This document shows positions 3,046 to 29,474 of a stretch of 64,000 nucleotides of DNA, piece by piece. A program made the position numbers and the translations under genes. Each line of letters begins with the position of its first letter. The stretch's first letter is position 1. The stretch lies in sequence record NC_041911.1, one strand, 5' to 3'. The notes under the pieces were generated by a model. The model ran no database searches, had not been told where the DNA came from, and worked only from the letters and a program-made list of their open reading frames with translations.

Positions 3046-3132
3046 GAGAGAACCCGCTTCTTAGAAGTTAGAAGAAAGTGGCTACTGCCGAGTTGGAATT
3101 ATTCCTTACTCACAAGATGATTGCGGCATAAA

Positions 3133-3154
3133 AGCGAGGGGTTTCCCCCTCGCT
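3133..3154. terminator. Terminator-like hairpin
   Basis: AGCGAGGGG/CCCCTCGCT stem preceded by GGCATAAA. Confidence 0.65.
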
Positions 3155-3189
3155 AATATCCTATTAAAAAGGATTAAACCGAAGTGCTG

Positions 3190-11117: not shown

Positions 11118-11750
11118 ATGGCATTGATCCCACCGGTTGGTACATCCGGCATTTATAAGCTCGATGCTCCGTTCGCGGCGCAGTTGCAGCCCAACATGTC
11201 GTATCGTTGCGACGCCATTCGTCGTCTCTCGGACTTATTGGAACTGGGGATCGATCCCTTCGCTGAGTTCTACGACAAGAATGGGCTGACGAAAGAGAAG
11301 TACGACGCAGACGTGGTAAACCAAGTTTGCATGATTTCTCTGGTGTCGTCAAGCGGTCACTGGTTGTATGTACCGTCGACCTACGTACTGGCCTACCCCG
11401 ATCTCAACGGAGTGCCGTACACGGTGATGGTGCTGGGCTTGGAATTGGGTGCTATTCCCAATTACAAGGACCTGACTGGTCTGAAACAAGCTCTGGCCAA
11501 TCTGACGCGCGATACGATTGGCGTGATGCCGACTGTAAAGGAGGTGGCCGTTTCGGCTGTCTCGAAGCTTTCTCAGGCTGATGCGGATGCCTTGGAAGCT
11601 GCGCGGCAGCAGTTGATCACCAACTCCCAAACGGACCGTGCTAAGTTACTGGCAGTGCAGCAAGCATATGCTTCCCTGCAACAACAGTATGCAGCGCTCG
11701 AAGCATACGTCCAGCAACACGCACTGACCCAAGCACCAACCTCGCCATAA
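11118..11750 (+). CDS. Conserved hypothetical or virion protein with C-terminal coiled coil
   Basis: GGAGG RBS, co-transcribed with the preceding gene. Confidence 0.6.
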   Translation: MALIPPVGTSGIYKLDAPFAAQLQPNMSYRCDAIRRLSDLLELGIDPFAEFYDKNGLTKEKYDADVVNQVCMISLVSSSGHWLYVPSTYVLAYPDLNGVPYTVMVLGLELGAIPNYKDLTGLKQALANLTRDTIGVMPTVKEVAVSAVSKLSQADADALEAARQQLITNSQTDRAKLLAVQQAYASLQQQYAALEAYVQQHALTQAPTSP

Positions 11751-11760
11751 GCAACATAAA

Positions 11761-11793
11761 GCCAGGAGGGGAAACCCTCCTGGCTCTTATGCC
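11761..11793. terminator. Bidirectional terminator, identical to 15351-15383
   Basis: GCCAGGAGGG-GAAA-CCCTCCTGGC stem-loop plus TCTTATGCC. Confidence 0.85.
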
Positions 11794-11801
11794 CTTGAAG
11801 A

Positions 11802-12761
11802 TTAATCGTTGTCGGTTCCATCCAGATGACCGTGGAAGACTGGAGCAGTAACATCACCTTCGAATACGGCATCGCCCGTGGCACGAATCTTACCGTTAAG
11901 TACGATGTCGCCACCGGAACCATCCGCAGCACCGGTCGTCATACCCTGCGCAATCGCCAAGCTACCGCCAACGATAGCGTTGCTACCGGACTGGAAGATC
12001 TCGGTGGTAATCAGCTGCGGCGTCACGAAAGTAGCTTTCGCTGCTTTAGTAGCGTATTCACCTTCTACAATCAAGTTGTACTTCCCTTTCACATTGGTGG
12101 TAAAGTCACCCTCAACGTTGATTAGGAGATCTTTACCATCCAGATTAATGAAGGTGCCGTCGGCATTCTTCAAAAGCATCCGTTTAGCGCCGGAGTCCCA
12201 GTGGAAGACGTTTTCGATCGTATCGAGGAACTGGAGCAGACCGTCTTTGGTGTTGATCGAGATGTCGTAGCCGTAGGGTTCGCCATCAGCTTGCGAGGTA
12301 TGGAACCGTACCTGCTTGGTATGCGTCGAGATTTCCAAGAAGTAGGTATTATCCTCTCCAGGAGTAGCGTTCTCATCCTGCGTGCCGCTGAAGCCGAAGA
12401 TCACTGTTTCCAGCTTACGGAATTTCTCTTCGTACTCACATTCACTCCAGTAATACTTGTCCGCATCTGCAAACTTCCAGATACAGACCTTTTCGCCCCG
12501 GCGTACGTCCGGTGCAGTCTTACGATTCGAGCTGAATGGTAACCACCGCGCTGTCAGCGTAGCGGACTGGTGAACCGTAGTTTCAAATGAGGCACCGTCG
12601 GCATCGGTGCCCTTGTTGTTTGTAGAGGTAAGGTTGTCGGTCAGTTCCCCGTTTGTCATGGGAAGCTGCTCCATCGGTGTTACCTGAATCTCTTTCGACG
12701 ACAGCAGCTTGTTCGCCGCAACAATGCCGTACGAATACATGACAAGCTTGCTTGATTCCAT
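11802..12761 (-). CDS. Baseplate central spike / puncturing protein (phiKZ gp164-like)
   Basis: N-terminal ARWLPFSSNRKTAPDVRRGEKV OB-fold-like region, repetitive beta-helix (VEGDF/VKGKY/VEGEY), C-terminal FHGHLDG HxH apex; start at MESSK. Confidence 0.7.
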   Translation of the reverse strand: MESSKLVMYSYGIVAANKLLSSKEIQVTPMEQLPMTNGELTDNLTSTNNKGTDADGASFETTVHQSATLTARWLPFSSNRKTAPDVRRGEKVCIWKFADADKYYWSECEYEEKFRKLETVIFGFSGTQDENATPGEDNTYFLEISTHTKQVRFHTSQADGEPYGYDISINTKDGLLQFLDTIENVFHWDSGAKRMLLKNADGTFINLDGKDLLINVEGDFTTNVKGKYNLIVEGEYATKAAKATFVTPQLITTEIFQSGSNAIVGGSLAIAQGMTTGAADGSGGDIVLNGKIRATGDAVFEGDVTAPVFHGHLDGTDND

Positions 12762-12854
12762 TGCGTATCCAGAAGAAGGCCAGAGAGTAGGATTTAACAC
12801 TTTCTGGCAATTTATTGTTGGTAGTATGCACCAAAAACTCAAAGAATTGATCCA

Positions 12855-15347
12855 ATGAAAATCCTCGAACTCGAACTCGATCTCTACAAGAGGTTGACGA
12901 AGGTGGCGCACATCCGTCACTTCAAGCTGACATTGAAAGAAATCGTGCAGTTGATCTTGGGGACAAATGGTTCGGGCAAAAGCTCTATTCTCTACGAACT
13001 GTCGCCTCTCCCAGCTAACCACAAGGCTTACCATAAAGGTGGTAAGAAGCGTGTCCTGATTGCTCATCAGAACAAGATGTACGAACTCATCTCTGATTTT
13101 GCAAACGGGCAAGACCACTACTTTTATGTTGATGGTGAAAACCTGAACACAGGTCGCACCGTCACCATTCAAAAGGAACTGGTCAAAGAGCACTTCGGTA
13201 TCACGTTTGAGACTCATGAGCTGCTGCTGGGTTACGAGCAGTTCTCCAAGATGTCTCCGGCACGTCGTCGTGAACTCTTTACGATGCTGTGTGTGGTGGA
13301 TTACACCTATGCCATCAAGCTGTACCAGAAAATCCAAGTTGCGATGCGCGACGATGTCGGTACGCTGAAGAACCTCAAGAAGCGCCTGGTCACGGAAACA
13401 GCGAATGCGCTGAAAGACGAAGAGATCACTGGTCTGCGTGTGCGCCTAGCTGAGCTGAATCGCGAATCGCAAGCAATGTACATGCTGCGTAACGCTAATG
13501 CTCAGACCACCTTCGATGCGCGCACGGTAGCTGAAGCCGCCAAGAAGACTATCGATGACCTGTTGCAGAAGTTTCGCTCGGTGCGCTCGATTCTGCGCGA
13601 TAAGTGTTGGATCACGCCAGACGAATATCAGGAAGACATCGACAGTCTGCGCGCTGAACTGCATGGTATCGAAGGTGTCTATGCTCGTGCGTCGGAAGAG
13701 TTCATCAAGGCTTCTTCCGAGGTTGAGCAGGTTTCTGGGCTCGAAGCAGAAGATGTCACCAAGCTGCAAGACGAAATCATCGCTTCGAACAAAAAAGCAC
13801 AGAGCTTGCTGGAGACGCGTAAACGGCCTCTGGAGGGCTTTAAGCCTTTGGCAGCCTCGCAGTCTATGGAACTGGTCTACGAGTCGTTATACAGCGTTCT
13901 AACCGAGCTGCCGGCCGATCCTGAGGGACAAATGTCGTCCCAAGCATTGAGCGAGGTGTCAGAGCGCTTGCGCTTGGTCGAAATGTCGATCAGTGCCAAC
14001 CGCGAGAAGCTGTCTGGTCTCGAACATCGGGAAAAACATCTGGTCGATCTGGCGAGTTCGGAGGACATCAATTGTCCAAAGTGCGAACACTCATTCAAGA
14101 TGGGTTACTCGGTTGGGGAGCACGAATCGATCAAGACGCGTATCGCGGCAGGGCGCAATCACATCGAAGCACTAGGCAAAGAAGCTGCTGCTTTGAAGGA
14201 ACAGCAAGAGCGGCTTAGCAACTACGCCAGTCTTTATAAGGAATACGTGCGCATCACTCGTAACTCGCCAGAACTGCAACCGTTGTGGGATCTGATCGTC
14301 GAGGAAGACGCTCTGCGTCGTTCGCCTCAGCATGCTCTGACGCTGATCGAACTGGTACGCAGCGATCTGCGTATCGAGATGCAGGTAAATGCGATCTATG
14401 AAAAGATTGCGACCGACGATCACCGACTGAAACTCGCACAGTACGCTCAGTCCGAAGCCATCAAGACCAAGAAGCAACGTTTGGAACAGTTGGAACAGGA
14501 AATCGGTCGTCTGTCGAAGCAGAAGGTCTGGGTACAGGGTCGTCTAAGCGATCTGGTTCGCACTCAGCAGCAGATCAAGCACATGTACGAGGTCGGCGAC
14601 CGGATGGCAAAGGCCAAGGAAGAGTTCACCAAAGCTTCCTACGCAATTATCGATGCTGTCAAGAATGAGATCATCGATGAAGCGCTAGCTGAGACTCATC
14701 GCGAGATTGCTACGCTGTCGACGCGTATCCACTCGATCGACCAACACGAGACACTGATCAATGATCTGAAACAGCAGATCCAAAATCACGAGAAATCAGA
14801 AAAGGCTTACAAGGCCTTGGCTGACGCTCTGTCTCCGACTGATGGTCTGATCGCTGAAGGGATGCTGGGCTTCATTCGCAACTACGTGGCGCGGATGAAC
14901 GCACTAATCGCTAAGGTGTGGACGTACAAAATGGAAGTGCATGACTGCTCGACCGAGGACGATTCCGCGGAACTGAACTACAAGTTCCCAGTGACAATCG
15001 GTAACGATCCAGAACCAGTGCCTGATGTTGCTGATAGCTCATCTGGTCAAGAGGAAATGCTGAACCTAGCATTCCGCGTCGTGGCCGCGCAGTGTCTCGG
15101 TCTGGATAAAGGTCCGCTGCCATTGGATGAGTTTGGTAAGACCTTCGATGAAAGCCATCGCGAAGCTGCGACCAACGTCGTGCGTCAGCTGATTGAACAA
15201 CTGAGCTTCTCGCAGTTGTTTATGATCTCGCACTACGAATCGAGCTACGGAGCATTCTACAATGCTCAGATGTCAGTCATCGATAAGCGCAATATCACTG
15301 TACCAGTTAACCGCCGGTATAACGAGTTCACTGAACTAGCAGCATAA
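12855..15347 (+). CDS. sbcC: SbcC/Rad50-like SMC ATPase (phiKZ gp165-like)
   Basis: GTNGSGKS Walker A, long coiled coils, CPKC zinc hook, SSGQ signature, LDEFGKTFD Walker B. Confidence 0.92.
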   Translation: MKILELELDLYKRLTKVAHIRHFKLTLKEIVQLILGTNGSGKSSILYELSPLPANHKAYHKGGKKRVLIAHQNKMYELISDFANGQDHYFYVDGENLNTGRTVTIQKELVKEHFGITFETHELLLGYEQFSKMSPARRRELFTMLCVVDYTYAIKLYQKIQVAMRDDVGTLKNLKKRLVTETANALKDEEITGLRVRLAELNRESQAMYMLRNANAQTTFDARTVAEAAKKTIDDLLQKFRSVRSILRDKCWITPDEYQEDIDSLRAELHGIEGVYARASEEFIKASSEVEQVSGLEAEDVTKLQDEIIASNKKAQSLLETRKRPLEGFKPLAASQSMELVYESLYSVLTELPADPEGQMSSQALSEVSERLRLVEMSISANREKLSGLEHREKHLVDLASSEDINCPKCEHSFKMGYSVGEHESIKTRIAAGRNHIEALGKEAAALKEQQERLSNYASLYKEYVRITRNSPELQPLWDLIVEEDALRRSPQHALTLIELVRSDLRIEMQVNAIYEKIATDDHRLKLAQYAQSEAIKTKKQRLEQLEQEIGRLSKQKVWVQGRLSDLVRTQQQIKHMYEVGDRMAKAKEEFTKASYAIIDAVKNEIIDEALAETHREIATLSTRIHSIDQHETLINDLKQQIQNHEKSEKAYKALADALSPTDGLIAEGMLGFIRNYVARMNALIAKVWTYKMEVHDCSTEDDSAELNYKFPVTIGNDPEPVPDVADSSSGQEEMLNLAFRVVAAQCLGLDKGPLPLDEFGKTFDESHREAATNVVRQLIEQLSFSQLFMISHYESSYGAFYNAQMSVIDKRNITVPVNRRYNEFTELAA

Positions 15348-17416: not shown

Positions 17417-19021
17417 ATGGCTACCGCTTACCAGTATCCGTTCGATCCCAGCGGCACTTCGTCTGCCAACCGGATCTTGAACGAGCAGCATGTCATCACC
17501 GCTGCAAACTTTCGGGATTACCACTACGTAATCCCGAACTTTGCCCCTTTCTTTGAGGGCGACTTCGACATCAAAATGCAGTTTCCTGATGGCTCGATTC
17601 GTCCTCTGACGCAAGGCGTCGACTTCTACTTCTCGAACCAGTTCTTGGACGCTTCGCGTGCCTGTGCGAAGCCTGTCTATGGTTCGATCTCGTTCCTTGA
17701 CACCGATACCGCCGGTATCCTGTCGATCAACTACAACACTGTTGGTGGCGAGTGGAACATCTCGCCGACAGAAATCTCGCGTATCTTGGCCGAAGAGCTG
17801 CGCAACCCCCGTATTACGACCTGGGAACAAATCACGTATTTACCGGAACGTTTCCCGGTAGTCGATCACGCGTGGGATCTGATCGACATGGTGGGTATGT
17901 CTCCGGTTGTGGCTGCCATCGAAGCACTGCGCGACGCGGTTGTGACGAAGAACGGTGGTAACTTCACCGATCACATCAACAACTACTCGAACCCGCACAA
18001 CACCACGGCGGCGCAAGTAGGGTTGGGCAATCTGTTCAACTATCCGATTGCTACGACGGCTGATGCCCAGGCTGGCACGAGTAACTCGTTCTACATGACA
18101 CCCGCGCGTGTCAAGGACGAAATCATGGCATTCGCTACGCCGCTGTCGCACTTGACGGATTACACCAATCCGCACCAAGTGACAAAGACCCAGGTGGGGC
18201 TGAGCAATGTGGCGAACTTCGCAGTTTCGACCACGGCAGAAGCTCAAGCAGGTGCTGTTGATACGTCTTACATGACGCCGCTGAAGACAGCACAAGCCAT
18301 CACGCAGCAGGCCGGTTCAGCGCTCGCAGCTCATGTTGCGAACCAGCAGAACCCGCACAACGTGACGAAAGATCAGGTTGGCTTGTTCAACGTCCAGAAC
18401 TATCCGATCGCTACGCAACAGCAAGCGATGGCTGGTACGGACAACGCCTCGTACATGACGCCGCTGCGCACAGCACAGCTGGTAGCTCAGATCTCTTCAG
18501 TGGCGCTACAGAACCACTTGAATGACTTTACCAACCCTCACCAAGTGACGGCCGGTCAGGTGGGTCTTGGTAATGTGCAGAACTACGGTATCGCTACTCA
18601 GGCTGATGCACAAGCCGGCGTGAGCAATACGCTGTACATGACGCCGGGTCGTGTCGCTGATGCCATCAATGCACTGGCTACGCCGCATGCTCACTTGCTG
18701 GATATGAACAATCCGCACCAAGTGACCGCGGCTCAAGTCGGCGCATACACGACTACTCAGACGGATACGCTGTTGGGTGGTTACGTGCGGCTGACCGATC
18801 AGTGGGTAGCGGGTGAAACCAAAGCTGCCTTCATTGCAGAAGTGCTGCAGGGTACGGCGAACAATGCTTCGATGGTTTACGGTTTCACGGAAGCCCAACT
18901 GGCCGCCGATCTCGAAACCAATTACTTCGATAACGCTTACGCCACCATTGCTGCATTCAATGCATTGGCCCAGCGCGTGACCGACATCGAAACGGCCCTC
19001 AACAGCATCACCGTTGTGTAA
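17417..19021 (+). CDS. Tail fibre / baseplate-attached fibre protein with about 4.5 NPHxVTxxQVGL repeats
   Basis: N-terminal YQYPFDPSG..NRI..E.H domain as in phiKZ-like fibres; tandem ~60-aa repeats NPH.VT..QVGL.NV.NY.IAT...AQAG...YMTP. Confidence 0.8.
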   Translation: MATAYQYPFDPSGTSSANRILNEQHVITAANFRDYHYVIPNFAPFFEGDFDIKMQFPDGSIRPLTQGVDFYFSNQFLDASRACAKPVYGSISFLDTDTAGILSINYNTVGGEWNISPTEISRILAEELRNPRITTWEQITYLPERFPVVDHAWDLIDMVGMSPVVAAIEALRDAVVTKNGGNFTDHINNYSNPHNTTAAQVGLGNLFNYPIATTADAQAGTSNSFYMTPARVKDEIMAFATPLSHLTDYTNPHQVTKTQVGLSNVANFAVSTTAEAQAGAVDTSYMTPLKTAQAITQQAGSALAAHVANQQNPHNVTKDQVGLFNVQNYPIATQQQAMAGTDNASYMTPLRTAQLVAQISSVALQNHLNDFTNPHQVTAGQVGLGNVQNYGIATQADAQAGVSNTLYMTPGRVADAINALATPHAHLLDMNNPHQVTAAQVGAYTTTQTDTLLGGYVRLTDQWVAGETKAAFIAEVLQGTANNASMVYGFTEAQLAADLETNYFDNAYATIAAFNALAQRVTDIETALNSITVV

Positions 19022-19073
19022 CCAACCCATTTAAGGGCGAGGCGGGAGACCGCCTCGTTTGAGCGAACAAGTC

Positions 19074-20351
19074 ATGACTATTCCGATCTATCGCTATCCC
19101 TTGGATGGCACCGGCACCAGCCCGGATAACCTGGTGGTTGGAGAAGAACACCAGCTCTCCAACCGAGCAATTCGTTGCGTAGCGCCGACCTACGGTGGCT
19201 TCTACGCTGAATCCGCAGTGGTGACGGACTTCAACACTGGCGTACCGCTGGTGCGCGGTGTTGACTACTACTTTGGTGAGCTGTTCGAGTTCCCCACTGG
19301 TCGTTACGGTAAGGAAATCTTCGGCCTGATCGTTATCACCAAGCCGAACGTTGCTGCCGTTTCGATCAATTACCAAGCACTGGGTGGTGATTACTCCTAT
19401 TCCATGGACGCAATCATCGCCATGATCGACAACCTGAATCTGGACACGCGTCCGGTGGAATGGGGTGCGATCATTGGTCGTCCGGCGCTGTTCGATCCGG
19501 CAACGCACTGGCACGATGCTGGTGACATCTACGGCTTCGAATACGTAGTGAGCGCGCTGATCGATCTGCGCAACGCCATCCTGACGGGTGACGTGGCCAG
19601 CCACGATGAGATCTATCGCTACATCGATCGCTGGGCAGCTCAGCAGAGCGCGGCCATCCAAGCAGTTTCCGATGCACTGCACACGCACATCGTCGACTAC
19701 ACCAATCCGCACCAAACCACGAAGGCACAGGTAGGGTTGGGACTGGTGTCGAACTTTGCGACAGCGCTGCAAGCTGACATGAATACTGGTACGGCGAACA
19801 ACCTGTTCGTGACGCCAGATATCGTTGCCGCGTACGTGACTCAGCAGGCAGTGAATCCGCTGCTTGCTCACATTGCCGACAAGGGTAACCCGCACCAGAC
19901 TACCGCAGCACAAGTGGGACTGGGTAATGTCCAGAACTATGGTGTTGCTTCCCAGCCGGACATGAATGCCGGTACGCGTGACGACGTCTATCTGACGCCG
20001 CTGAAGGTCGCGACCTATGTGACAAACGTCGCGGTTAACCCGATGAATGCGCACATTGCCAATACCAACAATCCGCATGCCGTGACACAGGCACAAGTTG
20101 GGTTGGGTAGTGTTGCGAACTATCCGGTCGCTACTCAGGCTGAAGCGCAAGCTGGAACGGCTAACAACCGCTACATGACTCCCTGGCTCGTAAACCAAGA
20201 AGTCATGCAGATGCTCAACAACGGTGCATTCGACGGTCGCTATATGCGGTATGGCACCGCCACTGATGGTTCGACCTGGGTTAGCGCTGGTATCGCCTAC
20301 GTGTTCGTATCGGGAGCATGGCGACAGTTCTGGCCGCCTGTGTGGCAGTAA
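19074..20351 (+). CDS. Tail fibre protein, paralogous to the preceding gene, with 3 NPH-QVGL repeats
   Basis: YRYPLDGTG..NLV..EEH N-terminus; three repeats; C-terminal YVFVSGAWRQFWP. Confidence 0.8.
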   Translation: MTIPIYRYPLDGTGTSPDNLVVGEEHQLSNRAIRCVAPTYGGFYAESAVVTDFNTGVPLVRGVDYYFGELFEFPTGRYGKEIFGLIVITKPNVAAVSINYQALGGDYSYSMDAIIAMIDNLNLDTRPVEWGAIIGRPALFDPATHWHDAGDIYGFEYVVSALIDLRNAILTGDVASHDEIYRYIDRWAAQQSAAIQAVSDALHTHIVDYTNPHQTTKAQVGLGLVSNFATALQADMNTGTANNLFVTPDIVAAYVTQQAVNPLLAHIADKGNPHQTTAAQVGLGNVQNYGVASQPDMNAGTRDDVYLTPLKVATYVTNVAVNPMNAHIANTNNPHAVTQAQVGLGSVANYPVATQAEAQAGTANNRYMTPWLVNQEVMQMLNNGAFDGRYMRYGTATDGSTWVSAGIAYVFVSGAWRQFWPPVWQ

Positions 20352-20359
20352 GAGATGTG

Positions 20360-20392
20360 AAAACCACTCCGCCCAAAAGGTGGAGTGGTTTT
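20360..20392 (+). terminator. Terminator after the fibre genes
   Basis: AAAACCACTCCGCC/GGTGGAGTGGTTTT stem followed by TATG. Confidence 0.75.
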
Positions 20393-20426
20393 TATGTCTG
20401 GTGTTATTTGCTAAAAGGAATTTATC

Positions 20427-20804
20427 GTGGCCACCACCTCCTCTACAACCACTGATGTGCAAGGGTATGACATCAATACTCTCCGCAACACAATTAACAG
20501 TGTGCGGGCTCGTATTGCTGCTGGTCAACCCATCAGTGCCAACCAAATCGCTGACCTTGCTTGGGTGTACAACACTTGGATTCAGCATACCCACAACTAC
20601 TACGACTATTACTGGATCGCTTACGGTAATACGTCTCCCTATGGCACCACTGCTGTATGGAAAACTTCTGGCAACGTTGGTGTAGGGTATTTCTCACCAC
20701 CTGGGGCTGGACAAACTGTTCAAGCTGCTCATGTGAATGGCTTAGCGGGTCTGGTCAATGCGATCCGATCCCATACCCACTATTCGCCGGACGGCAGTTA
20801 CTAA
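20427..20804 (+). CDS. Small protein with two GQ-x19-HTH modules (fibre-tip-like)
   Basis: AAAGGA RBS, GTG start; GQ...HTH at aa 33-56 and 95-118. Confidence 0.7.
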   Translation: MATTSSTTTDVQGYDINTLRNTINSVRARIAAGQPISANQIADLAWVYNTWIQHTHNYYDYYWIAYGNTSPYGTTAVWKTSGNVGVGYFSPPGAGQTVQAAHVNGLAGLVNAIRSHTHYSPDGSY

Positions 20805-20887
20805 ACATTCCGTTAGGTAAAAAAGCAAGTGCGTTTTTACCTATCATTCGATTTTTATAGTAATCCATTTCGAGGACGAATCCACCA

Positions 20888-21085
20888 ATGTCCAATTATC
20901 TCTCCACTGTAACAACGGCTGCGGCGCCAGCTAACACTGTGGGGCAAGGCCAAGCGGTACAACCAGCCACGATGAACCAAATGGCTGCTGTACTGGATTC
21001 ATTGCTGAGCCACACGCACGTCTTTTATGACAACTACGGCAGCAACTGCAATTGTAACTGCGCCTGCACCCGAGGATCTCTGTAA
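20888..21085 (+). CDS. 65-aa protein with a GQ-x19-HTH module and NCNCNCAC tail; candidate radical SAM substrate or precursor
   Basis: GAGG RBS; stop overlaps the next start (TAATG); Cys at 54, 56, 58, 60. Confidence 0.75.
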   Translation: MSNYLSTVTTAAAPANTVGQGQAVQPATMNQMAAVLDSLLSHTHVFYDNYGSNCNCNCACTRGSL

Positions 21086-21972
21086 TGAAAACTGTCTTTA
21101 TCAAAAGCGGCGGCTACTACGAAACGCCAGGTGTCGCTGTCTCCGGCGCTATCAACGACGCCTTCGACTTCAACGTGAGTCAGCATTGCCGTTCGAATGC
21201 GCTGTTCATGCTCGACTATGTCAGTCGCGAATACCGCCTCAGCCTTACCGTTGCCTCTGGTGACATGAAAGATGCGTTCGCGCGTCTCGACATGGATCTG
21301 ATCACCAAGGCCGCGGAAGAGCATGGCTTCTCTTATGTCGGCCTGGTGGCTGACGAAAAGGCGATGATGGCTCGCCCGGATGAATTCCTGCGCGACTTGT
21401 CCGTCGTGACCGTCTGCAAGGAAACCGGCAAGTTCCTCGATGCCAAGTCCGGCACCGCTCTGACCGGCAACAACATCACACCGGTGATCTACTGCGTGAA
21501 GATGGCTGACAGCACGTACGCCATGATCCTGAGCCAGATGGCCAACGTGATGCCGAGCATGGTCGACAATCCGAAGGTGGGTCGTGACGACATGAACGTC
21601 ATCGTGGTCAATGACGGCGATGCCATGCGTAGTCAGTTCGTGGACGTCAGCTTCCACGGCGCTACCAAGCATTTCCGCAACAACGACCTCGTTACTGGTT
21701 TCGCAGTGTTTGCTTGGCCGAATGCTCTGATTGAAGTTAATATCTTCAAGGACACGCCGCTCGCCGCTGAGTTCAAGAAGAACTTCGAACTGGAAGTCGA
21801 CAGCAGCTTTGATGCCAAGATCGTCGACGGCAAGGTCGTTATCCAGATGCCGCCTTCGTGTCGCACTGGCTATCTGTCGATCAAGCTGAAGACCACACCG
21901 CTGTACGAAGACGTCTCGTCGCGCGAGATCAAGGAAATGCTTTCGTTCGACTTCATCGTGACGGTTGTTTAA
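21085..21972 (+). CDS. Unknown protein translationally coupled to the Cys-rich peptide
   Basis: 295 aa, strong C-ending codon bias, TAATG overlap. Confidence 0.8.
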   Translation: MKTVFIKSGGYYETPGVAVSGAINDAFDFNVSQHCRSNALFMLDYVSREYRLSLTVASGDMKDAFARLDMDLITKAAEEHGFSYVGLVADEKAMMARPDEFLRDLSVVTVCKETGKFLDAKSGTALTGNNITPVIYCVKMADSTYAMILSQMANVMPSMVDNPKVGRDDMNVIVVNDGDAMRSQFVDVSFHGATKHFRNNDLVTGFAVFAWPNALIEVNIFKDTPLAAEFKKNFELEVDSSFDAKIVDGKVVIQMPPSCRTGYLSIKLKTTPLYEDVSSREIKEMLSFDFIVTVV

Positions 21973-21988
21973 CCACTCCTATTCGAAG

Positions 21989-22015
21989 CCGACAGATGAC
22001 TTGTTCATCTGTCGG
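21989..22015 (+). terminator. Terminator-like hairpin before the radical SAM genes
   Basis: 11-bp stem CCGACAGATGA/TCATCTGTCGG followed by TTTTATGC. Confidence 0.7.
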
Positions 22016-22041
22016 TTTTATGCTCCCATCAGGACACCATC

Positions 22042-23655
22042 ATGCAAGAACAAGTTATCAAAATCCATCGCAAGAAAGAACCCATCGACTTCAAGAAACC
22101 CGGGGAGCGTATCAAAACCATCGCCGAGGTCAAGGACATTCTGTTCGCTGAACTGAAAGTCCTGAACGTGATCCTGACCAACGCCTGCAATCTCTCGTGT
22201 AGCTACTGCTTCGAACAGCACAAACAGGACTACGGCAAGTTCACCCAAGAACAACTGAAGCAAGTGTATGACTTCCTGCTGAACGCCAACACTCAGCCGC
22301 ATCGCCACTTCCAGTTCTTTGGTGGTGAGCCGTTGGCGCAGAAGAAGAAGATCCTCGACTTCTGTCGCGACCACAAGGACGAACTCTCGGCCAACAAGGA
22401 GCAGGTGCGTGTGTCGATCGTGACCAACGCGCTGCTCCTGACACCGGAATTCATCGAGGAATACTGCAGCTACGATTTTACGTCGCTGGTCATTTCTTTG
22501 GACACGGATGATGCCGAGTCGAACCGTCGCGAACTGACGCAAGAGAACATCGACTACATCTTCGAGATGATCAAGCTGTTGCCTGACTCGATGATGCGCG
22601 ATGCTCACCACGTCTCGATTCGTTGCACCATCAACGAAGAGAGCGTACCGCACCTCGATCGCTTCATGGAGCGTCTGTATGCGTCCGGCGTGCGCAATTT
22701 CGTGATCCATCCGCTGATCCTCGCTAAGGATCAAGGCGCCATTGAATGGCAGCCGGGTATGTGGGAGCGGATGTACCATTCACTGCATCAAGCCATGCAT
22801 CGCTGGGACGACTTCAAGATCACCTGGGCCGAAGGCGTGGGTGTGAAAGGCGAGTCCAACTGCATGGTCGGTTCGGACATGATTGCGATGGACGCCTCGG
22901 GTGACTTCAGCGGTTGCTACTTCCTGACCAACCTGAAAGAAACCTACGGCAACACGATGCTCGGCAATCTGTTCCGCGACGAGATCTACATCGATCGTTA
23001 CGTCGAGTTCCAGCAAGCCTATGCCAAGTCGCTGGAACACGAACAGTGCCAGTCGTGCCACCTCAAGAACTTCTGCTACCAGTGCCCGGCTGGTAATGCA
23101 GCTACTGGTGGTTCGCTGTTCCGTCCGGACTCGATGTGCAAGCGCATTGTGGAACTGTTCCTCACTCTGCGTCAGGACTTCAACCGTAAGGCTTTGCTCC
23201 AACAGTTCAAGGAGCTGGAAGAAGCTGTTGTCCAGCAAGGTCCGATTGCTCAGTCTCGTGCAGTGCTGCATTGCATCTACCGCGAGTTCACTGGTGAGAT
23301 TCAGGACAACGCCATCATTGACGCTTATGAAGAACTGCCGGCACCGCACACGCTGCTCTTCATGTTCAAGCAAATGCTGGAAGGCGGTTTGACTAGCATT
23401 CCGCCGCTCGACGTGTGGGTGTCTGGACTACTGCGCCGCAACCCTCGTCCGGAGGAAAGCATCGATCCGTACGAGTTCTACCTGTTCTTGTGCAAGCTAC
23501 GTGGTATCCCGATCGATTTCAAATACACTCCGAATGGTTCTGTTCAAGAGCAGAACTACTTTATCACCCTGACTCACTTGCTGATTTTCGATGAAAGTCG
23601 TTATCTCAGCAAATACGATCCGGAACACAGCCGGTCTCGTATTCTCGACCTGTAA
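22042..23655 (+). CDS. Radical SAM/SPASM enzyme 1 with ~170-aa C-terminal extension
   Basis: CNLSCSYC, FFGGEP, IVTNA; SPASM: NCMVG..GDFSGCYF..LGNL..CQSC.....CYQCP..C. Confidence 0.93.
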   Translation: MQEQVIKIHRKKEPIDFKKPGERIKTIAEVKDILFAELKVLNVILTNACNLSCSYCFEQHKQDYGKFTQEQLKQVYDFLLNANTQPHRHFQFFGGEPLAQKKKILDFCRDHKDELSANKEQVRVSIVTNALLLTPEFIEEYCSYDFTSLVISLDTDDAESNRRELTQENIDYIFEMIKLLPDSMMRDAHHVSIRCTINEESVPHLDRFMERLYASGVRNFVIHPLILAKDQGAIEWQPGMWERMYHSLHQAMHRWDDFKITWAEGVGVKGESNCMVGSDMIAMDASGDFSGCYFLTNLKETYGNTMLGNLFRDEIYIDRYVEFQQAYAKSLEHEQCQSCHLKNFCYQCPAGNAATGGSLFRPDSMCKRIVELFLTLRQDFNRKALLQQFKELEEAVVQQGPIAQSRAVLHCIYREFTGEIQDNAIIDAYEELPAPHTLLFMFKQMLEGGLTSIPPLDVWVSGLLRRNPRPEESIDPYEFYLFLCKLRGIPIDFKYTPNGSVQEQNYFITLTHLLIFDESRYLSKYDPEHSRSRILDL

Positions 23656-23668
23656 GGTAACTTAACCC

Positions 23669-24751
23669 ATGAACTACGATAACATCCAGGACGTCTCGAT
23701 CTATGTGGGTCCTGCGTGCAACTTCAACTGCACGTATTGTGATCGCGCCTACGTAAACAACGTAGGTGTGGATTCTGCTGAATGCGATCCGGCCTTGGTC
23801 GACTTCGTAGTTGATGTGGTGCTGCACTCCGAGCGTCCGATGGTTTCCTTCCACGGTGGGGAACCATTTGTTTACATCAAGACCATGGAGAAGATCATCG
23901 AGGCCGTGCTCGAACGCGTACCAGATTTCAAGGAACGCGGCGCGATCTTCTTCATCCAGACCAATGGCTCGCTGATTACCCGTCAGCGAGCTTTCTTCGA
24001 GAAATACAAAGAGGTGCTCTACGTGAGCATCTCTTACGACTTCAAGTACCAGGGCGATAACCGCACTGCGTACGACATTGACTCAACCCTGCAACTCTTG
24101 AATGATCTGGGGATTGGGACGAACCTGCAATACGTGATTCCGACCTACGACAAGAACGCTTGCGATCACGCAGCGTACTCGGAAGTCATGCGGTTGTTCT
24201 CCAAGTTTAAGCTGGGGCAACTGAACCTGATCCTGTTGCGTCACATTCGGCAGGAAGATAAATTCGAAACAGTGATCGCGGATGAGAGCATCGACCTAAA
24301 GGGATTCTTCCTCGGCTTCATGCGCTTCGTCCAGTTGCTGTACGTCTCAGGTATCAATGTCCACATCGACGGTCATGCCAACAAGATCGATAAGAACTAT
24401 TACAACAACCATAAGCAAATGGTGCTCGCTCCAAATGGCCTGATCGTACCGGAGTACCAGTTCATCGAGTATGATGATTACGATTTCGCTATCGGTCGCT
24501 GGAAGCCTTACGTGGAGATCTCTCGTGATCAGATGCCGGAGAAGGCCGCCAAGAAGATTCGCAAAGAGTGCCAGACTTGTCCGATGGCGGACATCTGTGG
24601 TTTGCGTTATCACTACGCAATGTTCGATATGGACCCGCCAACTCCGCAACGGTGCAAGGAGTTCTACTCTCTGAACCTGATCGCGATCAAGCACCTGTAC
24701 AAACTGAAAGAGCAACCCACCCTTCTCCACCATCTGGGAGTTCAGCAATGA
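23669..24751 (+). CDS. Radical SAM enzyme 2 with partial SPASM domain
   Basis: CNFNCTYC, FHGGEP, IQTNG, ISYD; C-terminal CQTCPMADIC..C. Confidence 0.92.
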   Translation: MNYDNIQDVSIYVGPACNFNCTYCDRAYVNNVGVDSAECDPALVDFVVDVVLHSERPMVSFHGGEPFVYIKTMEKIIEAVLERVPDFKERGAIFFIQTNGSLITRQRAFFEKYKEVLYVSISYDFKYQGDNRTAYDIDSTLQLLNDLGIGTNLQYVIPTYDKNACDHAAYSEVMRLFSKFKLGQLNLILLRHIRQEDKFETVIADESIDLKGFFLGFMRFVQLLYVSGINVHIDGHANKIDKNYYNNHKQMVLAPNGLIVPEYQFIEYDDYDFAIGRWKPYVEISRDQMPEKAAKKIRKECQTCPMADICGLRYHYAMFDMDPPTPQRCKEFYSLNLIAIKHLYKLKEQPTLLHHLGVQQ

Positions 24752-25896
24752 GTCGCGCTATCACGATCGAGAATCCGAAAGAGCACTTCATCCGTTACGA
24801 CGGACTGCTCAACGTCCAGTATGACGTGACGTTTTCGATCTTCAAGAAGTACACCTGTCAAGCCGGGTGCAAGATCTGTTATATCAAGGATGACTTCCTG
24901 CCTAACGAGCAGTTCAAGAAGTATGTCCCGATAGCATCACACGTCAACACGCAGAGCTACGGCGACCGCCTGCTAGAATTCCTGTCATACTTTCAGATGG
25001 CAGCAATCATCGACGACCTGTACTTTGTGCGGGAAGAACATCCGGAGCTGTACAAGTTCTATCAGGAGTATAGCGAGGCCTTCTGGCTGAGTTCCATGAC
25101 GGACAACGCAGTGTTCCGTCACCTGCCGATTATTGAGGATGACCTTCGTGTCGTCGGTCTACGGGAGATCTCGCTCTCCGAGGAATTCTTGTATAAAGTC
25201 AACCAAACGAAGTTCTTTAACGCACTGGATAAAATTCAGAGGCGCGCTAAGATATTGAAAATAAAGGTAATACTGTCGGGTCTCCCTGGCATCGCGATTC
25301 GTGGCAACGATTTGATGCTCTGGTGTCAGAACAATCAAGTGCTCCTAGAGAAGCAATACGAGCACGGTGTTGAGCCGAATGGCCGCAGCTTCCTGTCTCA
25401 GTTGCCGAACACGCGTTACAGCGATCGCAGCCAGGAAACGCACTTCACTGAAGAGATCACCTACAGTGAGAATTCTGGTGAGATGCTGTACCCAATTCAC
25501 TCTGAGTCGATCTTCTTGCAGTACGATGACTTCTACTCGGAGCTGAAGTCTGCCACGCGTGAAGACCGCAGTGCGCCGTTTGCCAAGCTGGATGATTTTG
25601 TCCAGAGTCCGCAAGGCTTCTTGGCTAAGGTGCTGGAAGGTAAGCTGACGGATTACCGCAAGTATGCTTCGTGGATGCAGAACAAAGATCACGACTACTT
25701 CCGTTACTTTGACTATGTGGCGAATAACGTGGTAGTCAATCATGACTTCAACTTCATCCCGCGTATCGCTCTGCGGCCAGATAGCGTGTACTATCACAAG
25801 CTGATGGAACACACGAAGCTGGTGGATACCCAATACGGGCTCGTGGATTCTGCCGCGAGCAAGGTCGTTCCAATTTACTCTTTCAGAGAACAATGA
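24748..25896 (+). CDS. Divergent radical SAM-like protein 3 (no GGEP, no SPASM)
   Basis: CQAGCKIC motif near the N-terminus; ATGA overlaps at both ends; start reassigned to MSRAIT. Confidence 0.7.
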   Translation: MSRAITIENPKEHFIRYDGLLNVQYDVTFSIFKKYTCQAGCKICYIKDDFLPNEQFKKYVPIASHVNTQSYGDRLLEFLSYFQMAAIIDDLYFVREEHPELYKFYQEYSEAFWLSSMTDNAVFRHLPIIEDDLRVVGLREISLSEEFLYKVNQTKFFNALDKIQRRAKILKIKVILSGLPGIAIRGNDLMLWCQNNQVLLEKQYEHGVEPNGRSFLSQLPNTRYSDRSQETHFTEEITYSENSGEMLYPIHSESIFLQYDDFYSELKSATREDRSAPFAKLDDFVQSPQGFLAKVLEGKLTDYRKYASWMQNKDHDYFRYFDYVANNVVVNHDFNFIPRIALRPDSVYYHKLMEHTKLVDTQYGLVDSAASKVVPIYSFREQ

Positions 25897-27152
25897 GCAT
25901 AAGCACATTCCGAATCGAGAAGTCGGGTGAAGTGTTTGGTTACGACAACACACTGAACTCGATCCTCGATGCAAACAACCAGCCTGTGGGTCGAGCTTCG
26001 TCTCTCCTGGCTCAGGCTCCGTCGTTCGAGAAATCGAATACTCCTACCACCATCAAGGTACTGCTCGGGCACGCCTGTAACTACAGCTGCAGCTACTGCG
26101 TACAGAAGGACATCGGTAATCCGGCTGAACGTCCGAAGAACATCATGACCAAGGAGTTGATCAAGAAGATGCGCGCGCATCTCGATCTCTCCAACGTCAC
26201 GCGGATTGAACTGTGGGGCGGCGAGACGCTGCTCTACTGGCCGGATATCGTTGAGATCATCTCAGCACTGGATCGGGAAGGCATTACGTGGTACATCCCG
26301 ACCAACGGTACGATCCTGCGGATGAAGCACGCTGAGTTCTTCCGCCAGATGAAAGGCGAGATGACCATCGGCATCAGTCACGACGGTCCGGGTCACGTAT
26401 CGCTGCGTGGTCCGGAGTTCCTGCATCGCAAGATCGATGAGTTGGGTGCGCTGCAAGACGCCAAGGTACGGTTCAGCTTCAACGCTGTGATCAGTACCAC
26501 GAACTACGATCTGTTTGCCATCGATGACTACTTCCGCTTCTTCCTGCTCAAGGCAGACCTCGATCACGTAGGGCTGGGCTTCGAGCTGGGGCGGACGTAT
26601 GAGACGGGTGCTTGCGCTACCGAGTCGCACGTGATCACACTGGAGCAGATCCCGCACTATCGGTCGATTCTGAAAGCGTATCTCAAGCACCATCTCGATG
26701 CGTTCAAGAAAGGTCAAGCGCCGGAAGACATCGATGCCGATACTCGACTGTTCAACAGCCTGTTCCATTTCAGCAATGGTGTGATTCCGTACGCGAAGTC
26801 GCTAGTTCAGCAAAGCCCCATTCGCTATTACAGCAACTGCGGCACTGATGATCCGAACCTGATCACGCTGGACATGAATGGCGCTATCCGCGTTTGTCAG
26901 AACACGGACGAGAGCTACATCTACGGCAACGTTGCTAATATCGGCGCTGCTAAGATGCAGAAGGTCGATTACAGCAAGAACGACTTCTGCAAGGACTGCT
27001 CGGTTTTGCGGCTGTGCAATCGTAGCTGCCCGATCGAACTGCCATACGAAACCTTTTTGACCAACCACCATATCGAGAACGCTCACTACAGCGAGATACA
27101 ACTCTCGGCGTTTGAGTTGTTGTTCGATAGCCCTATCACCAAAGTGAACTGA
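25893..27152 (+). CDS. Radical SAM/SPASM enzyme 4
   Basis: CNYSCSYC, LWGGET, PTNG, ISHDG; SPASM: NCGT..GAIRVCQ..YGNV..CKDC.....CNRSCP. Confidence 0.93.
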   Translation: MSISTFRIEKSGEVFGYDNTLNSILDANNQPVGRASSLLAQAPSFEKSNTPTTIKVLLGHACNYSCSYCVQKDIGNPAERPKNIMTKELIKKMRAHLDLSNVTRIELWGGETLLYWPDIVEIISALDREGITWYIPTNGTILRMKHAEFFRQMKGEMTIGISHDGPGHVSLRGPEFLHRKIDELGALQDAKVRFSFNAVISTTNYDLFAIDDYFRFFLLKADLDHVGLGFELGRTYETGACATESHVITLEQIPHYRSILKAYLKHHLDAFKKGQAPEDIDADTRLFNSLFHFSNGVIPYAKSLVQQSPIRYYSNCGTDDPNLITLDMNGAIRVCQNTDESYIYGNVANIGAAKMQKVDYSKNDFCKDCSVLRLCNRSCPIELPYETFLTNHHIENAHYSEIQLSAFELLFDSPITKVN

Positions 27153-27160
27153 GAAAACTC

Positions 27161-27997
27161 ATGTCCGACATTCTTGACCGTTTTGTCCTGCCCGAAACTG
27201 CAGCCCAAGTTACCGAGCTGCGCGCCCAGCTGGACGCGATGAAGAACCATCGTGTCTTCGGTATGGTGAAAACCATCGACGACCTGCAAACCTTCATGTC
27301 GCTCCACGTCTACGCCGTGTGGGACTTCATGACGCTGGCCAAGCGCCTGCAGTGCGAGTACACCGGCATCAAGTTCCCGTGGGTGCCGCCGCGCCTCCCC
27401 AAGGTCGCCCGTCTGATCAACGAGATCATCCTGGCCGAAGAGTCCGACGACAACGGTGAGGGCGGTACTTGCAGCCACTTCGAACTGTACGCCATGGCCA
27501 TGCAAGAAATCGGTGACATCGACATGGAGTCGCTCGAAGCATTCGTAACGAACCTTCGTTACGGTATCCCGCCGGTGGAATCTGCTAACCGTGCACTGAT
27601 CAAGGCCGATCCGGAGTTCCGTGCGACTGTCACCAACTACATCGGCGATACTACTGCCGTGGCTCGCACTGGCCTGCCGGAAGAAGTGCTGGCCTACTTC
27701 GTCTTTGGTCGTGAAGATTCGATCCCGGCGATGTTCAGCAACCTGCTTGAGCAGATGGGTGATCTGGCTGCCAAAGCGACGACCTTCACGTACTACTTGA
27801 AGCGCCATATCCAACTCGACGGTGAAGACCACAGTGTCAAAGCTGCTGAGATGCTGTCGCTCGAACTGGAAGGCAATCCGATTCGCACGCGCACCGCACT
27901 GATCGCTGGTATCAATGCCGCCAAGTCCCGCATTGCTTTGTGGGATGCGATTGCTGCGAAGCTGGAAGCAACTCAAGCAGCGACGGCAACTGCCTAA
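27161..27997 (+). CDS. DUF3050 / heme-oxygenase-like diiron (HDO superfamily) protein
   Basis: FMSLHVYAVWDFM.L.K.LQ, RLINEIILAEESD, SHFELY..AM, FGREDSIP.MF, YYLKRHIQLDGEDH: DUF3050 signature with E/H diiron ligands. Confidence 0.85.
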   Translation: MSDILDRFVLPETAAQVTELRAQLDAMKNHRVFGMVKTIDDLQTFMSLHVYAVWDFMTLAKRLQCEYTGIKFPWVPPRLPKVARLINEIILAEESDDNGEGGTCSHFELYAMAMQEIGDIDMESLEAFVTNLRYGIPPVESANRALIKADPEFRATVTNYIGDTTAVARTGLPEEVLAYFVFGREDSIPAMFSNLLEQMGDLAAKATTFTYYLKRHIQLDGEDHSVKAAEMLSLELEGNPIRTRTALIAGINAAKSRIALWDAIAAKLEATQAATATA

Positions 27998-28018
27998 TCG
28001 ACTCACGACGGCATAAAG

Positions 28019-28047
28019 GAGAGTAGAGGCCAGACGGCCTCTACTCT
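28019..28047. terminator. Bidirectional terminator closing the radical SAM cluster; same 29 nt as 2225-2253
   Basis: GAGAGTAGAGGCCAGACGGCCTCTACTCT flanked by GGCATAAA and TTATGT. Confidence 0.85.
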
Positions 28048-28695
28048 TTATGTCGCTATTTTGTCATACTCCGCTAGGTCGATACGGAAGCCATCTTCCA
28101 ATGCGCCATAAGCAACGCGCATGAACAATTGGAAAGTGATGTGATCGAGCACTTCCACTTTGAACAACGGCTCGACTATCTTCTTGATGCGTTCCGGTAA
28201 GCGATAATCCATAACGTCTTCGAAAGCTGAGTTCAGAATGCGCCGGCGCACCGGATCAGCAAACTTCCGATAGCCATCAATCACCTTACAATAGCGGATG
28301 AAGGGCTGTACTACAGAAGGAGCCACCCGTCGGAAGAGATGTGTATTGTAGATCTCTTCAAAGTAGGAAAGTTCATTCTCCGTAAATAGCTGCCGGGGGA
28401 AGGTGATACGGCGCCAATACAGTAGGCACTTGTTGTGTCCCATGACATGGAAGTAGTGCGGCAGAATATCGTACGGGTCCCGGATGATCTGCTCAAAAGC
28501 TTCTTGCGGGATAATCGTGCAGAGTTCTGGAACGTCGTAGCTCTCCAACTCTGCTTCCGGTACAGCGATCAGCTTGTATCCATCCAAGCCAGAGAGAAAG
28601 AAGTCATGGTCATCAATCAAGACTGCTTCCACGAGTTCAGGGAGCTGCTTGAGATACTCCACAGCGATGGCGTTCAATTCTTCGATAGTTTTCAT
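28048..28695 (-). CDS. Hypothetical protein
   Basis: 215-aa ORF from MKTIEE; visibly more AT-rich than core genes. Confidence 0.6.
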   Translation of the reverse strand: MKTIEELNAIAVEYLKQLPELVEAVLIDDHDFFLSGLDGYKLIAVPEAELESYDVPELCTIIPQEAFEQIIRDPYDILPHYFHVMGHNKCLLYWRRITFPRQLFTENELSYFEEIYNTHLFRRVAPSVVQPFIRYCKVIDGYRKFADPVRRRILNSAFEDVMDYRLPERIKKIVEPLFKVEVLDHITFQLFMRVAYGALEDGFRIDLAEYDKIAT

Positions 28696-28794
28696 CTCAG
28701 TTCCCAATAATTCGACACAACAATCCATACAGTGGTGAAAAATAACCGTATAACCCCCATAGGAGCCCTTTAGAGGCCCTACAGCAGCATAACA

Positions 28795-28828
28795 CGAGTA
28801 AAGACAGGACTTTGCCTGTCTTTACTCG
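28795..28828. terminator. Terminator hairpin
   Basis: 14-bp stem CGAGTAAAGACAGG/CCTGTCTTTACTCG, followed by TTATGT. Confidence 0.75.
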
Positions 28829-28859
28829 CTTATGTCGTCTAAGAGCGTTTATGGCCGTT

Positions 28860-29474
28860 CTAGAACTTGTTGCAGAAAACAGTCGCGTACAGCTCATCGA
28901 GCTTGGCGCGCTGTTCCGGCGTGTAGACATCGTTGCCACCGAAGATGGTGTCGGCCAGAGTGATCGGCAGGGGAGGCCACTCGGTGATCGTTTCCGGTAC
29001 TTCCAGATCGATCTTGACCCAGTCCTTCGGATTGCCTTGGGCATCGATGAAGACATCCACTTCCCACTTCAGGTCAGTGCCTTCGATCGGGAAGGTGTAA
29101 CGGATCTTATCCATCGACTCGCCAGTGATCAGGCGGAAGACTTCGTGCAGATCCTTGGAGACGGGCACGGATACTTCATCGCACTCCCCGCGACCAGTGT
29201 AGGCCTTGCCAGTCAGGGTGTAACGTACCTGGCCCATGCCGTTAGTTTCACGGACACGGATCGTACCGCCCTTGCCTTTGAGCGAGGATTGCTTCTGGGT
29301 TTCTTGGGAGACCGCTTTCTGCAGCTCTTCCGGATTGGTCAGACGACCGTACCAGACGTACTCTTTTTCTTTGGCTTTCTCGCCGTTTTCGAGATCTTCC
29401 AGCGCAACGTTCAGCAGACCGAAAGACAGAGATGCCAGTCCGAGCGGGGACTGAGTCAGGATGTTGGTTTTCAT
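28860..29474 (-). CDS. CYTH-like (triphosphate tunnel metalloenzyme) protein
   Basis: EKEY (ExE), IRVR, YTLTGK, DEV, KIRY, WEVDVF, IDLEV pattern. Confidence 0.7.
   Translation of the reverse strand: MKTNILTQSPLGLASLSFGLLNVALEDLENGEKAKEKEYVWYGRLTNPEELQKAVSQETQKQSSLKGKGGTIRVRETNGMGQVRYTLTGKAYTGRGECDEVSVPVSKDLHEVFRLITGESMDKIRYTFPIEGTDLKWEVDVFIDAQGNPKDWVKIDLEVPETITEWPPLPITLADTIFGGNDVYTPEQRAKLDELYATVFCNKF

Follow-up and report, generated by a model that had tools for sequence, protein, structure and literature searches.

What does a predicted O2-dependent iron enzyme do at the end of an operon of oxygen-sensitive radical S-adenosylmethionine (radical-SAM) enzymes in a bacteriophage? The window analyzed here, a 64-kb stretch of DNA, is 100% identical to positions 62001–126000 of the record of jumbo phage RP12 (window position + 62000 = record position). 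Its region 20000–29000 is 100% identical both to this Ralstonia solanacearum phage (AP017924 / NC_041911) and to its sister RP31. The gene that raises the question is ORF080 of RP12 (YP_009598773; 27161..27997, + strand), an intact open reading frame (ORF) of 278 codons that starts with ATG and is labelled 'hypothetical protein' in RefSeq. We find that its product is a heme-oxygenase-like non-heme iron protein of the HamA/PvfA/MgoB family and that it closes a cassette encoding four radical-SAM enzymes and a Cys-rich peptide. Tentatively, we propose that ORF080 carries out an accessory, O2-dependent oxidation of an intermediate derived from this peptide.

The ORF080 protein matches the Pfam family PF11251 (DUF3050) along the whole profile, positions 1–233 of 233, with an E-value of 2.2e-68 and 230.8 bits against a cut-off of 22.2. 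Nothing else in Pfam is matched, the PqqC / TENA-THI4 family included, and no NCBIfam model matches. Among the sequences of solved structures, the only match is HamA, from the fragin/valdiazen (ham) cluster of Burkholderia cenocepacia (PDB 9VWB; E=2.7e-50). The AlphaFold2 model, built on 57 relatives, is an all-helical bundle with a predicted local distance difference test score (pLDDT) of 95.9, and its top match in the PDB is again HamA (Foldseek E=2.4e-15; template-modelling score (TM) 0.82/0.92; root-mean-square deviation 2.0 Å). Further matches, after HamA, are UndA, CADD, TenA, HrmI, PqqC, PolF and FlcD. The structure search of BFVD gave no match at E<=0.001. With the PADLOC defence profiles, ORF080 has no match and the radical-SAM genes have generic viperin-core matches only. 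A degraded or chance ORF is ruled out by the full-length profile match and the conserved synteny. A PqqC homologue is likewise ruled out: no profile matches, and PqqC ranks 14 among the fold matches, with a TM of 0.58 and 13% identity.

The active site was mapped by a HMMER alignment with 9VWB. This alignment places E93, H106 and H216 of ORF080 opposite Glu84, His96 and His199, the iron ligands in the HamA crystal, and H49, R184 and R257 opposite His40, Arg167 and Arg240, which were proposed to contact 2-oxoglutarate; as far as mapped, all of them are conserved. E185, D220 and H224 make up the remainder of the three-carboxylate/three-histidine set typical of the heme-oxygenase-like diiron oxidase (HDO) superfamily. 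The candidate metal ligands are thus E93, H106, E185, H216, D220 and H224, located on helices 80–94, 106–117, 173–185 and 207–236 of the model. Ligand and co-substrate residues are invariant or nearly so in the alignment of 57 sequences, and also among 100 sequences drawn from viral, stand-alone and nonribosomal peptide synthetase (NRPS)-linked contexts. These alignments suggest that ORF080 is a catalytically competent oxygenase of the HamA/PvfA/MgoB family with an intact predicted active site. A preliminary description of the locus had reported a full DUF3050 signature with conserved Glu and His ligands and had pointed to CADD for structural comparison. Both points are borne out, by the end-to-end profile match and the six invariant or nearly invariant ligands, and by a model in which these ligands lie on the expected helices and CADD is among the fold matches.

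The same description called the protein diiron, a term that is unproven. The only solved member of the family, HamA, contains a single iron and is 2-oxoglutarate-dependent as reported (PMC12522199). It was described to bind 2-oxoglutarate, to oxidize N-hydroxy-valine attached to a carrier domain (+16 Da), and to show no diferric absorption band; the authors explain the empty second metal site by Glu206 (PMC12522199). Among our 100 sequences, the position equivalent to Glu206 is variable and the adjacent His is invariant. Because this position varies and the second-site residues are strictly conserved, a purely mononuclear model leaves the conservation of the second site unexplained. Other heme-oxygenase-like superfamily proteins often lose metal during purification. 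ORF080 may hold either one iron or two, and the dispute over HamA-family chemistry extends to the role of 2-oxoglutarate and the true reaction. By count of the deposited 9VWB chain, the ligand cited as 'Glu184' is not a glutamate, and the other cited residues agree (PMC12522199). A family-invariant Glu in a Gly-Arg-Glu motif (HamA 168) is not treated as a ligand in that work.

The annotation of ORF080 as such is not new. MgoB of the mangotoxin operon was assigned to DUF3050 in 2012, and an mgoB mutant still makes the toxin, but less of it (PMC3298696). PvfA and MgoB of Pseudomonas are orthologues of HamA, and all three fall in one family; PvfA and HamA were reported to be non-essential for hydroxylamine intermediates (PMC11659414). 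In 2017, ORF80 appeared in the RP12 genome paper as a homologue of MgoB, and ORF76/77/79 as radical-SAM-type, without interpretation (PMC5468394). With these members, a HamA structure, the label in the RP12 paper and the renaming of PF11251 to HamA_HO-like in newer Pfam, the family cannot be called uncharacterised, as the preliminary description had it. The gene alone is ordinary; the novelty is its genomic context. ORF080 shares PF11251, the fold and ~36–44% identity with HamA, PvfA and MgoB, and like mgoB, pvfA and hamA, without which part of the pathway output is still made (PMC3298696, PMC11659414), the phage gene looks accessory. The bacterial genes, however, have an AurF-like N-oxygenase and an NRPS as neighbors, and their products act on valine or leucine bound to a carrier, whereas ORF080 stands with four radical-SAM enzymes and a ribosomal peptide. 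Neither of the neighbors typical of the pvf/mgo/ham diazeniumdiolate pathway, an AurF-like N-oxygenase (PvfB/HamC) and an NRPS (PvfC/HamD), is found among the cassette genes or their flanks.

ORF080 is the last gene of a densely packed unit. From ORF074 to ORF080 the genes are separated by gaps of 8 to 69 nt or overlap by 1 to 4 nt, and a strong hairpin stands at both ends. The upstream hairpin (20354..20398, + strand), terminator-like with a 20-bp stem, lies 3' of the tail-fibre gene ORF073 and is likely the upstream boundary of the transcription unit. The downstream hairpin (28009..28055) lies between the convergent genes ORF080 (+) and ORF081 (−). It has an inner perfect 13-bp stem at 28019–28048 followed by a U-rich tract, and a folding energy of −33.9 kcal/mol (z=−7.0), which none of 200 shuffled sequences equalled. 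A simple terminator scan missed this hairpin through its T-run rule; it is likely a two-way terminator. The stop codon of ORF079 lies 8 nt before the ATG of ORF080. The close spacing, the terminator and the position of a phage-encoded heme-oxygenase-like iron protein at the end of a radical-SAM operon had all been noted in the preliminary description, and all three stand.

Is this arrangement peculiar to RP12? When 50,697 phage records were searched by tblastn, the ORF080 protein turned up in RP12 and RP31 only, and a search of isolated phages with ORF076 gave distant generic radical-SAM matches only. The nearest homologues of ORF080 (47–61% identity) all lie in RP12 synteny, on metagenomic contigs of RP12-like phages, and the DUF3050-bearing cassette is syntenic in the divergent RP12-like contigs L002, L003, L005, L059, L143 and L147. 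To survey the cassette more widely, viral contigs of IMG/VR were scanned with an alignment of ORF076 and scored by local profiles, which yielded 44 distinct cassettes. DUF3050 was scored absent only where at least 1.2 kb of downstream sequence was available, and three cassettes were not scorable. The gene is present in 29 of the remaining 41 and so is not absent from most orthologous clusters, in agreement with the co-occurrence expected from the preliminary description.

At several loci, DUF3050 overlaps the neighboring radical-SAM gene by its start or stop codon. In L195 and L199 it lies between radical-SAM genes 1 and 2, indicating that it stays within the cassette despite a changed gene order. 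All ten key residues are kept in 30 of 31 cassette copies, the exception being the L005 lineage (L005 10001–10828; also L006 and L007). There the ORF is full-length, free of stops and frameshifts, and active-site-degenerate, with substitutions at 7 of the 10 key positions, among them 5 of the 6 candidate metal ligands; the protein is identical on three contigs from three samples. L147 carries tandem DUF3050 genes after the fourth radical-SAM gene (11488–13102, equal to L194 14103–15729). The first copy, at the orthologous position, is substituted at 7 of the 10 key positions, including 4 of the 6 ligands. The second is intact, ~42% identical to the RP12 copy and of different ancestry. An intact copy beside a degenerate one suggests that catalysis may be under selection within the cassette. 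A fused tandem DUF3050-DUF3050 protein also occurs (P0259; L210–L212). In a neighbor-joining phylogeny with 200 bootstraps, the low-GC viral copies form one clade (198/200), and the RP12-type and low-GC cassette copies were joined in none of the 200 replicates. Between these two cassette types, DUF3050 has diverged by 36–37%, comparable to 29–43% for the radical-SAM genes. Because the two divergences are equal, the tree cannot tell vertical descent from replacement.

The putative substrate is encoded at the other end of the cassette. A Cys-rich ORF of 65 aa (20888..21085, + strand), unannotated in NC_041911 and located upstream of ORF075, encodes a putative precursor peptide. After a variable N-terminus come an H-x-H motif, an aromatic and Asp-rich stretch and four alternating x-Cys units, and the peptide ends in Arg-Gly-Ser-Leu; the C-terminal part in RP12 is HTHVFYDNYGSNCNCNCACTRGSL. 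A peptide ORF is present in 40 of the 41 scorable cassettes, and the exception, L178, starts inside the first radical-SAM gene. We compared these 40 peptides, which have 32 distinct tails and come from phages of 36–53% GC. H-x-H and an Asp after an aromatic pair occur in 40/40, a second Asp then follows in 38/40, and Arg-Gly is found among the last five residues in 40/40. The number of Cys varies from 3 to 6, mostly in alternating x-Cys units. Overall, the C-terminal ~26 residues are almost unchanged across ~40 viral cassettes. In L059, a GIY-YIG homing-endonuclease-type gene (2886–3842, − strand) lies between the peptide ORF and the ORF075 homologue.

The peptide is flanked by two proteins without a recognizable family. 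Upstream, ORF074 (20427..20804, + strand; 125 aa) contains two H-x-H motifs, has no Pfam family and is a paralogue of the central segment of the peptide, whose hidden Markov model matches it at E=1.6e-10. Homologues of ORF074 lie upstream of related cassettes in L002, L003 (two copies), L005, L059 and L030. In the tips of some phage fibres, iron is bound by H-x-H motifs. Downstream, ORF075 (21085..21972, + strand; 295 aa) is predicted to be a multi-domain, Ig-like β-sandwich; the confident predicted fold gave no informative structural or family match, with a TM of at most 0.24. Remote counterparts of ORF075 lie directly upstream of the peptide in distant cassettes.

The four radical-SAM genes follow on the + strand. 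ORF076 (22042..23655) is a radical-SAM/SPASM-type enzyme with CxxxCxxC at residues 49–56, and its best named likeness, under the family cut-off, is to PapB-type peptide maturases. ORF077 (23669..24751) has the motif at residues 17–24. ORF078 (24748..25896; residues 37–44) overlaps each neighbor by 4 nt and is a radical-SAM-like protein without a Pfam or NCBIfam match. ORF079 (25893..27152; residues 62–69) has a C-terminal Cys cluster in addition and 437 relatives at E<=1e-10. CxxxCxxC is thus present in 4/4 upstream enzymes, and Pfam Radical_SAM is reached by 3/4, not by ORF078. Pfam gave no match among the cassette proteins to a recognition element for ribosomally made, post-translationally modified peptides (RiPPs), a protease or an exporter.

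Comparison with a close isolate indicates that the whole island is accessory. Ralstonia phage FLC1-1B (L142; LC819005 73511–98095), which of the isolates examined is the closest, shares the flanking gene order of RP12 and lacks the entire island ORF074–ORF081. Consistently, FLC1-1B and FLC4-3B gave no match to the DUF3050 or ORF076 (radical-SAM) queries. In RP12, the cassette is preceded by ORF072 and ORF073 (17417–20351), tail-fibre-repeat proteins with several fibre-type motif repeats, which match the contractile-injection-system family CIS13 weakly within these repeats. By eye, the C-terminal end of the FLC1-1B fibre gene gp74 resembles a chaperone-type domain, which RP12 ORF073 lacks; no family search was made. 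Fibre-type genes repeatedly adjoin the cassette. In two cassettes without DUF3050, collagen-triple-helix-repeat genes follow the fourth radical-SAM gene (L149 14009–14806, L154 14034–15401).

The combination has partial precedents. UndA, CADD, SznF, BesC, HrmI, PolF and FlcD, all HDOs, resemble ORF080 in the helical-bundle fold and the three-carboxylate/three-histidine pattern, but they share merely 10–17% identity and a TM of 0.5–0.64 with it, and the nearest solved relative, HamA, was crystallized with one iron. Their substrates are free small molecules or their own residues, and to our knowledge none of them comes from a radical-SAM peptide cassette. The pathway of pyrroloquinoline quinone (PQQ) is similar in logic: a conserved small peptide, PqqA, is acted on by the radical-SAM/SPASM enzyme PqqE, and the last-acting enzyme, PqqC, is O2-dependent and of the same broad fold. 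PqqC with PqqE is a precedent for an O2-dependent enzyme coupled to a radical-SAM step, showing that O2-dependent and O2-sensitive steps can coexist in one peptide pathway. Unlike ORF080, PqqC is metal-free and a member of a different Pfam family. In contrast to the PQQ pathway, the phage system encodes four radical-SAM enzymes, lacks a PqqB- or PqqD-like gene and can do without its oxidase in ~30% of cassettes. MbnB, TglH and ApyH are O2-dependent, multinuclear non-heme iron oxidases that modify Cys-rich ribosomal peptides, and some RiPP iron oxidases share a cluster with B12-type radical-SAM enzymes such as ApyD. MbnB, TglH and ApyH have an unrelated fold (TIM barrel, DUF692), and homology of ORF080 to them was not seen in any search.

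How, then, might ORF080 act? The gene would be co-transcribed as the last of an accessory phage cassette that encodes the strongly conserved Cys-rich peptide, the β-sandwich protein and the four radical-SAM enzymes. The ORF080 product would oxidize the peptide, or a radical-SAM product made from it, in an optional O2-dependent step, by hydroxylation, N-oxygenation or oxidative cleavage. A parallel is provided by HamA, which oxidizes an amino acid tethered to a carrier protein using O2 (PMC12522199). Such tailoring is favored by the integration of the gene into the operon, its persistence inside the cassette on reordering and the intact copy that accompanies the degenerate one in L147. We rank it first, as a provisional choice, because it needs no unprecedented biochemistry. 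The preliminary description had also considered supply of a precursor or scavenging of oxygen; sequence alone does not separate these from tailoring.

Several observations weigh against a tailoring role. DUF3050 is absent from 12 of the 41 scorable cassettes, and its presence or absence is patchy on the tree of the fourth radical-SAM protein. In RP12-like phages it is the least conserved cassette enzyme, with 47–61% identity versus 54–83% for the four radical-SAM proteins. In the available sequence, the L005 lineage has the degenerate copy only, beside four radical-SAM genes that equal those of its relatives in conservation. Across the last ~26 residues of the 40 peptides, no column separates cassettes with DUF3050 from those without, and the last 26 residues are identical in L155, which lacks the gene, and L195, which has it. 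In addition, ~20 residues of the active-site region are invariant across NRPS, stand-alone and viral members, which would fit one common small ligand better than differing large substrates. An O2-dependent step coupled to radical-SAM chemistry, as the preliminary description envisaged, is thus supported in part: its observations are confirmed and the co-occurrence recurs, but 12 cassettes without the gene, two degenerate lineages and the alike peptide tails indicate that the step is accessory and not obligatory.

These points raise the possibility that DUF3050 is a partner of radical-SAM enzymes in general. In 34 further viral loci, the gene lies directly beside a B12-binding radical-SAM enzyme of ~487 aa, often with overlapping start and stop codons (IMG/VR contigs L009–L058, e.g. 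L035 9902–12117 and L022 8406–10723). The loci are of low GC and have T4-like neighbors (gp32-like, RecA/UvsX-like, primase), and the pair appears as a two-gene cassette in differing neighborhoods: between gp32-like and RecA-like genes, beside a predicted primase, or near small ORFs. Its radical-SAM member has weak matches to the ApyD model. On a bacterial-looking contig, a 762-aa protein (P0382; L209 7306–9594) combines B12-binding, Radical_SAM, DUF4070 and DUF3050 domains, and its radical-SAM part is unrelated to the viral B12-type enzyme. With the unrelated SPASM-type set of the peptide cassette, DUF3050 is thus paired with three unrelated radical-SAM classes. Together with the pocket invariance throughout the family, the dispensability of the gene and the unchanged peptide, this favors a generic service: one common small-ligand reaction, or help with iron or oxygen, for instance by donating iron, repairing clusters or dealing with a common by-product, useful to any radical-SAM enzyme in an aerobic host. 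A search for a peptide homologue near the B12-type pairs and in bacterial loci found none; a host copy could substitute for the phage gene, since stand-alone bacterial homologues are common; and in marine T4-like phages, genes for Fe-S support accompany many radical-SAM genes (PMC5332604). The bacterial loci point in the other direction. Across 75 bacterial DUF3050 loci, no gene within three positions of DUF3050 encodes a CxxxCxxC protein. In 24 of the 75, a ~1158-aa protein lies at +2 or +3, whose size and location suggest the pvf/mgo/ham-type NRPS, no family search having been made; the remaining loci have no common neighbor. The best-known bacterial context is an NRPS with a diiron N-oxygenase and no radical-SAM enzyme, no heme-oxygenase-like protein is known in such a helper role, and HamA is reported to oxygenate a specific carrier-bound substrate (PMC12522199). 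Furthermore, the shared ancestry of the low-GC viral copies could explain part of the viral association. Tailoring and generic partnership fit the data about equally well; the latter, which would be the more novel result, we consider possible if somewhat unlikely.

The fate of the peptide is a separate matter. Instead of a diffusible RiPP, the cassette might mature an element with a structural or cofactor-like role, for example a tail-fibre tip that binds metal or a peptide-derived cofactor on PQQ-like logic, with DUF3050 as the final oxidative step. The unusual conservation of the tail in 40 peptides from phages of such different composition would fit this, as would the H-x-H motif common to ORF074 and the peptide, the Ig-like fold of ORF075, which is not enzyme-like, and the related fold of PqqC among the structural matches. 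The fibre-type neighbors in RP12 (ORF072/073), L149 and L154 point the same way, and L030 has a weak, sub-threshold match to the autoproteolytic domain Peptidase_G2 (E=0.005). However, FLC1-1B lacks the island, so the element is not needed for this virion type; the RP31 data searched, annotation tables only, hold no virion proteomics evidence for cassette proteins; membership of the PqqC family fails; and adjacency to fibre genes may merely reflect a hot-spot for accessory genes. We regard such an element as distinctly unlikely, although it is compatible with tailoring and with a generic partner alike. A broader proposal, that DUF3050/HamA-type proteins are dedicated radical-SAM partners, as in the three unrelated classes and one fusion, and that the phage pair helps to make a cofactor-like or metal-binding element from the Cys-rich peptide, possibly part of the tail fibre and not a variable antimicrobial peptide, appears unlikely as well, if a little less so. 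Finally, ORF080 could be a stand-alone auxiliary gene, one that interferes with or supplies PvfA/HamA-type signalling in the host or encodes a self-sacrificing, CADD-like synthase. Its closest named relatives are MgoB/PvfA of Pseudomonas and Burkholderia (~40–45% identity), and a conserved Tyr lies near the metal site, as noted for CADD (PMC4520260). This is very improbable given the coupling of the gene to an operon between two hairpins, its position inside the cassette in L195, the repeated linkage to radical-SAM genes in phages of very different composition and the lack of an NRPS or N-oxygenase partner in the cassette region.

If ORF080 does tailor a peptide-derived intermediate, the cassette would provide a second, NRPS-independent genomic context for the HamA/PvfA/MgoB family, and a peptide of conserved sequence that a phage makes and modifies post-translationally would be a novel type of accessory function in phages. 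It would also place an O2-dependent iron enzyme repeatedly beside O2-sensitive radical-SAM enzymes in phages of aerobic hosts, which bears on how these enzymes function during infection. The cassette occurs widely among jumbo and other large phages, and no description of it was found in the literature searched; the pairing of DUF3050 with radical-SAM enzymes, recurrent in many phages, has not been described before. Natural controls are at hand in cassettes that carry DUF3050, lack it, have a degenerate copy or have it in tandem.

Other associations of DUF3050 were seen in the course of the survey. P0346 is a natural fusion of DUF4202 and DUF3050, and several other long proteins have a C-terminal DUF3050 behind 280–390 residues without a Pfam match. 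The small ORFs near some B12-type pairs look, by eye, like bS21, Hsp20 and ClpS. In low-GC cassettes, a small cupin/JmjC-like ORF directly follows DUF3050 (L025 10714–11184; L027 3554–4048, E=2.3e-5 in L027), an arrangement that recalls the cupin HamB beside HamA in the ham cluster.

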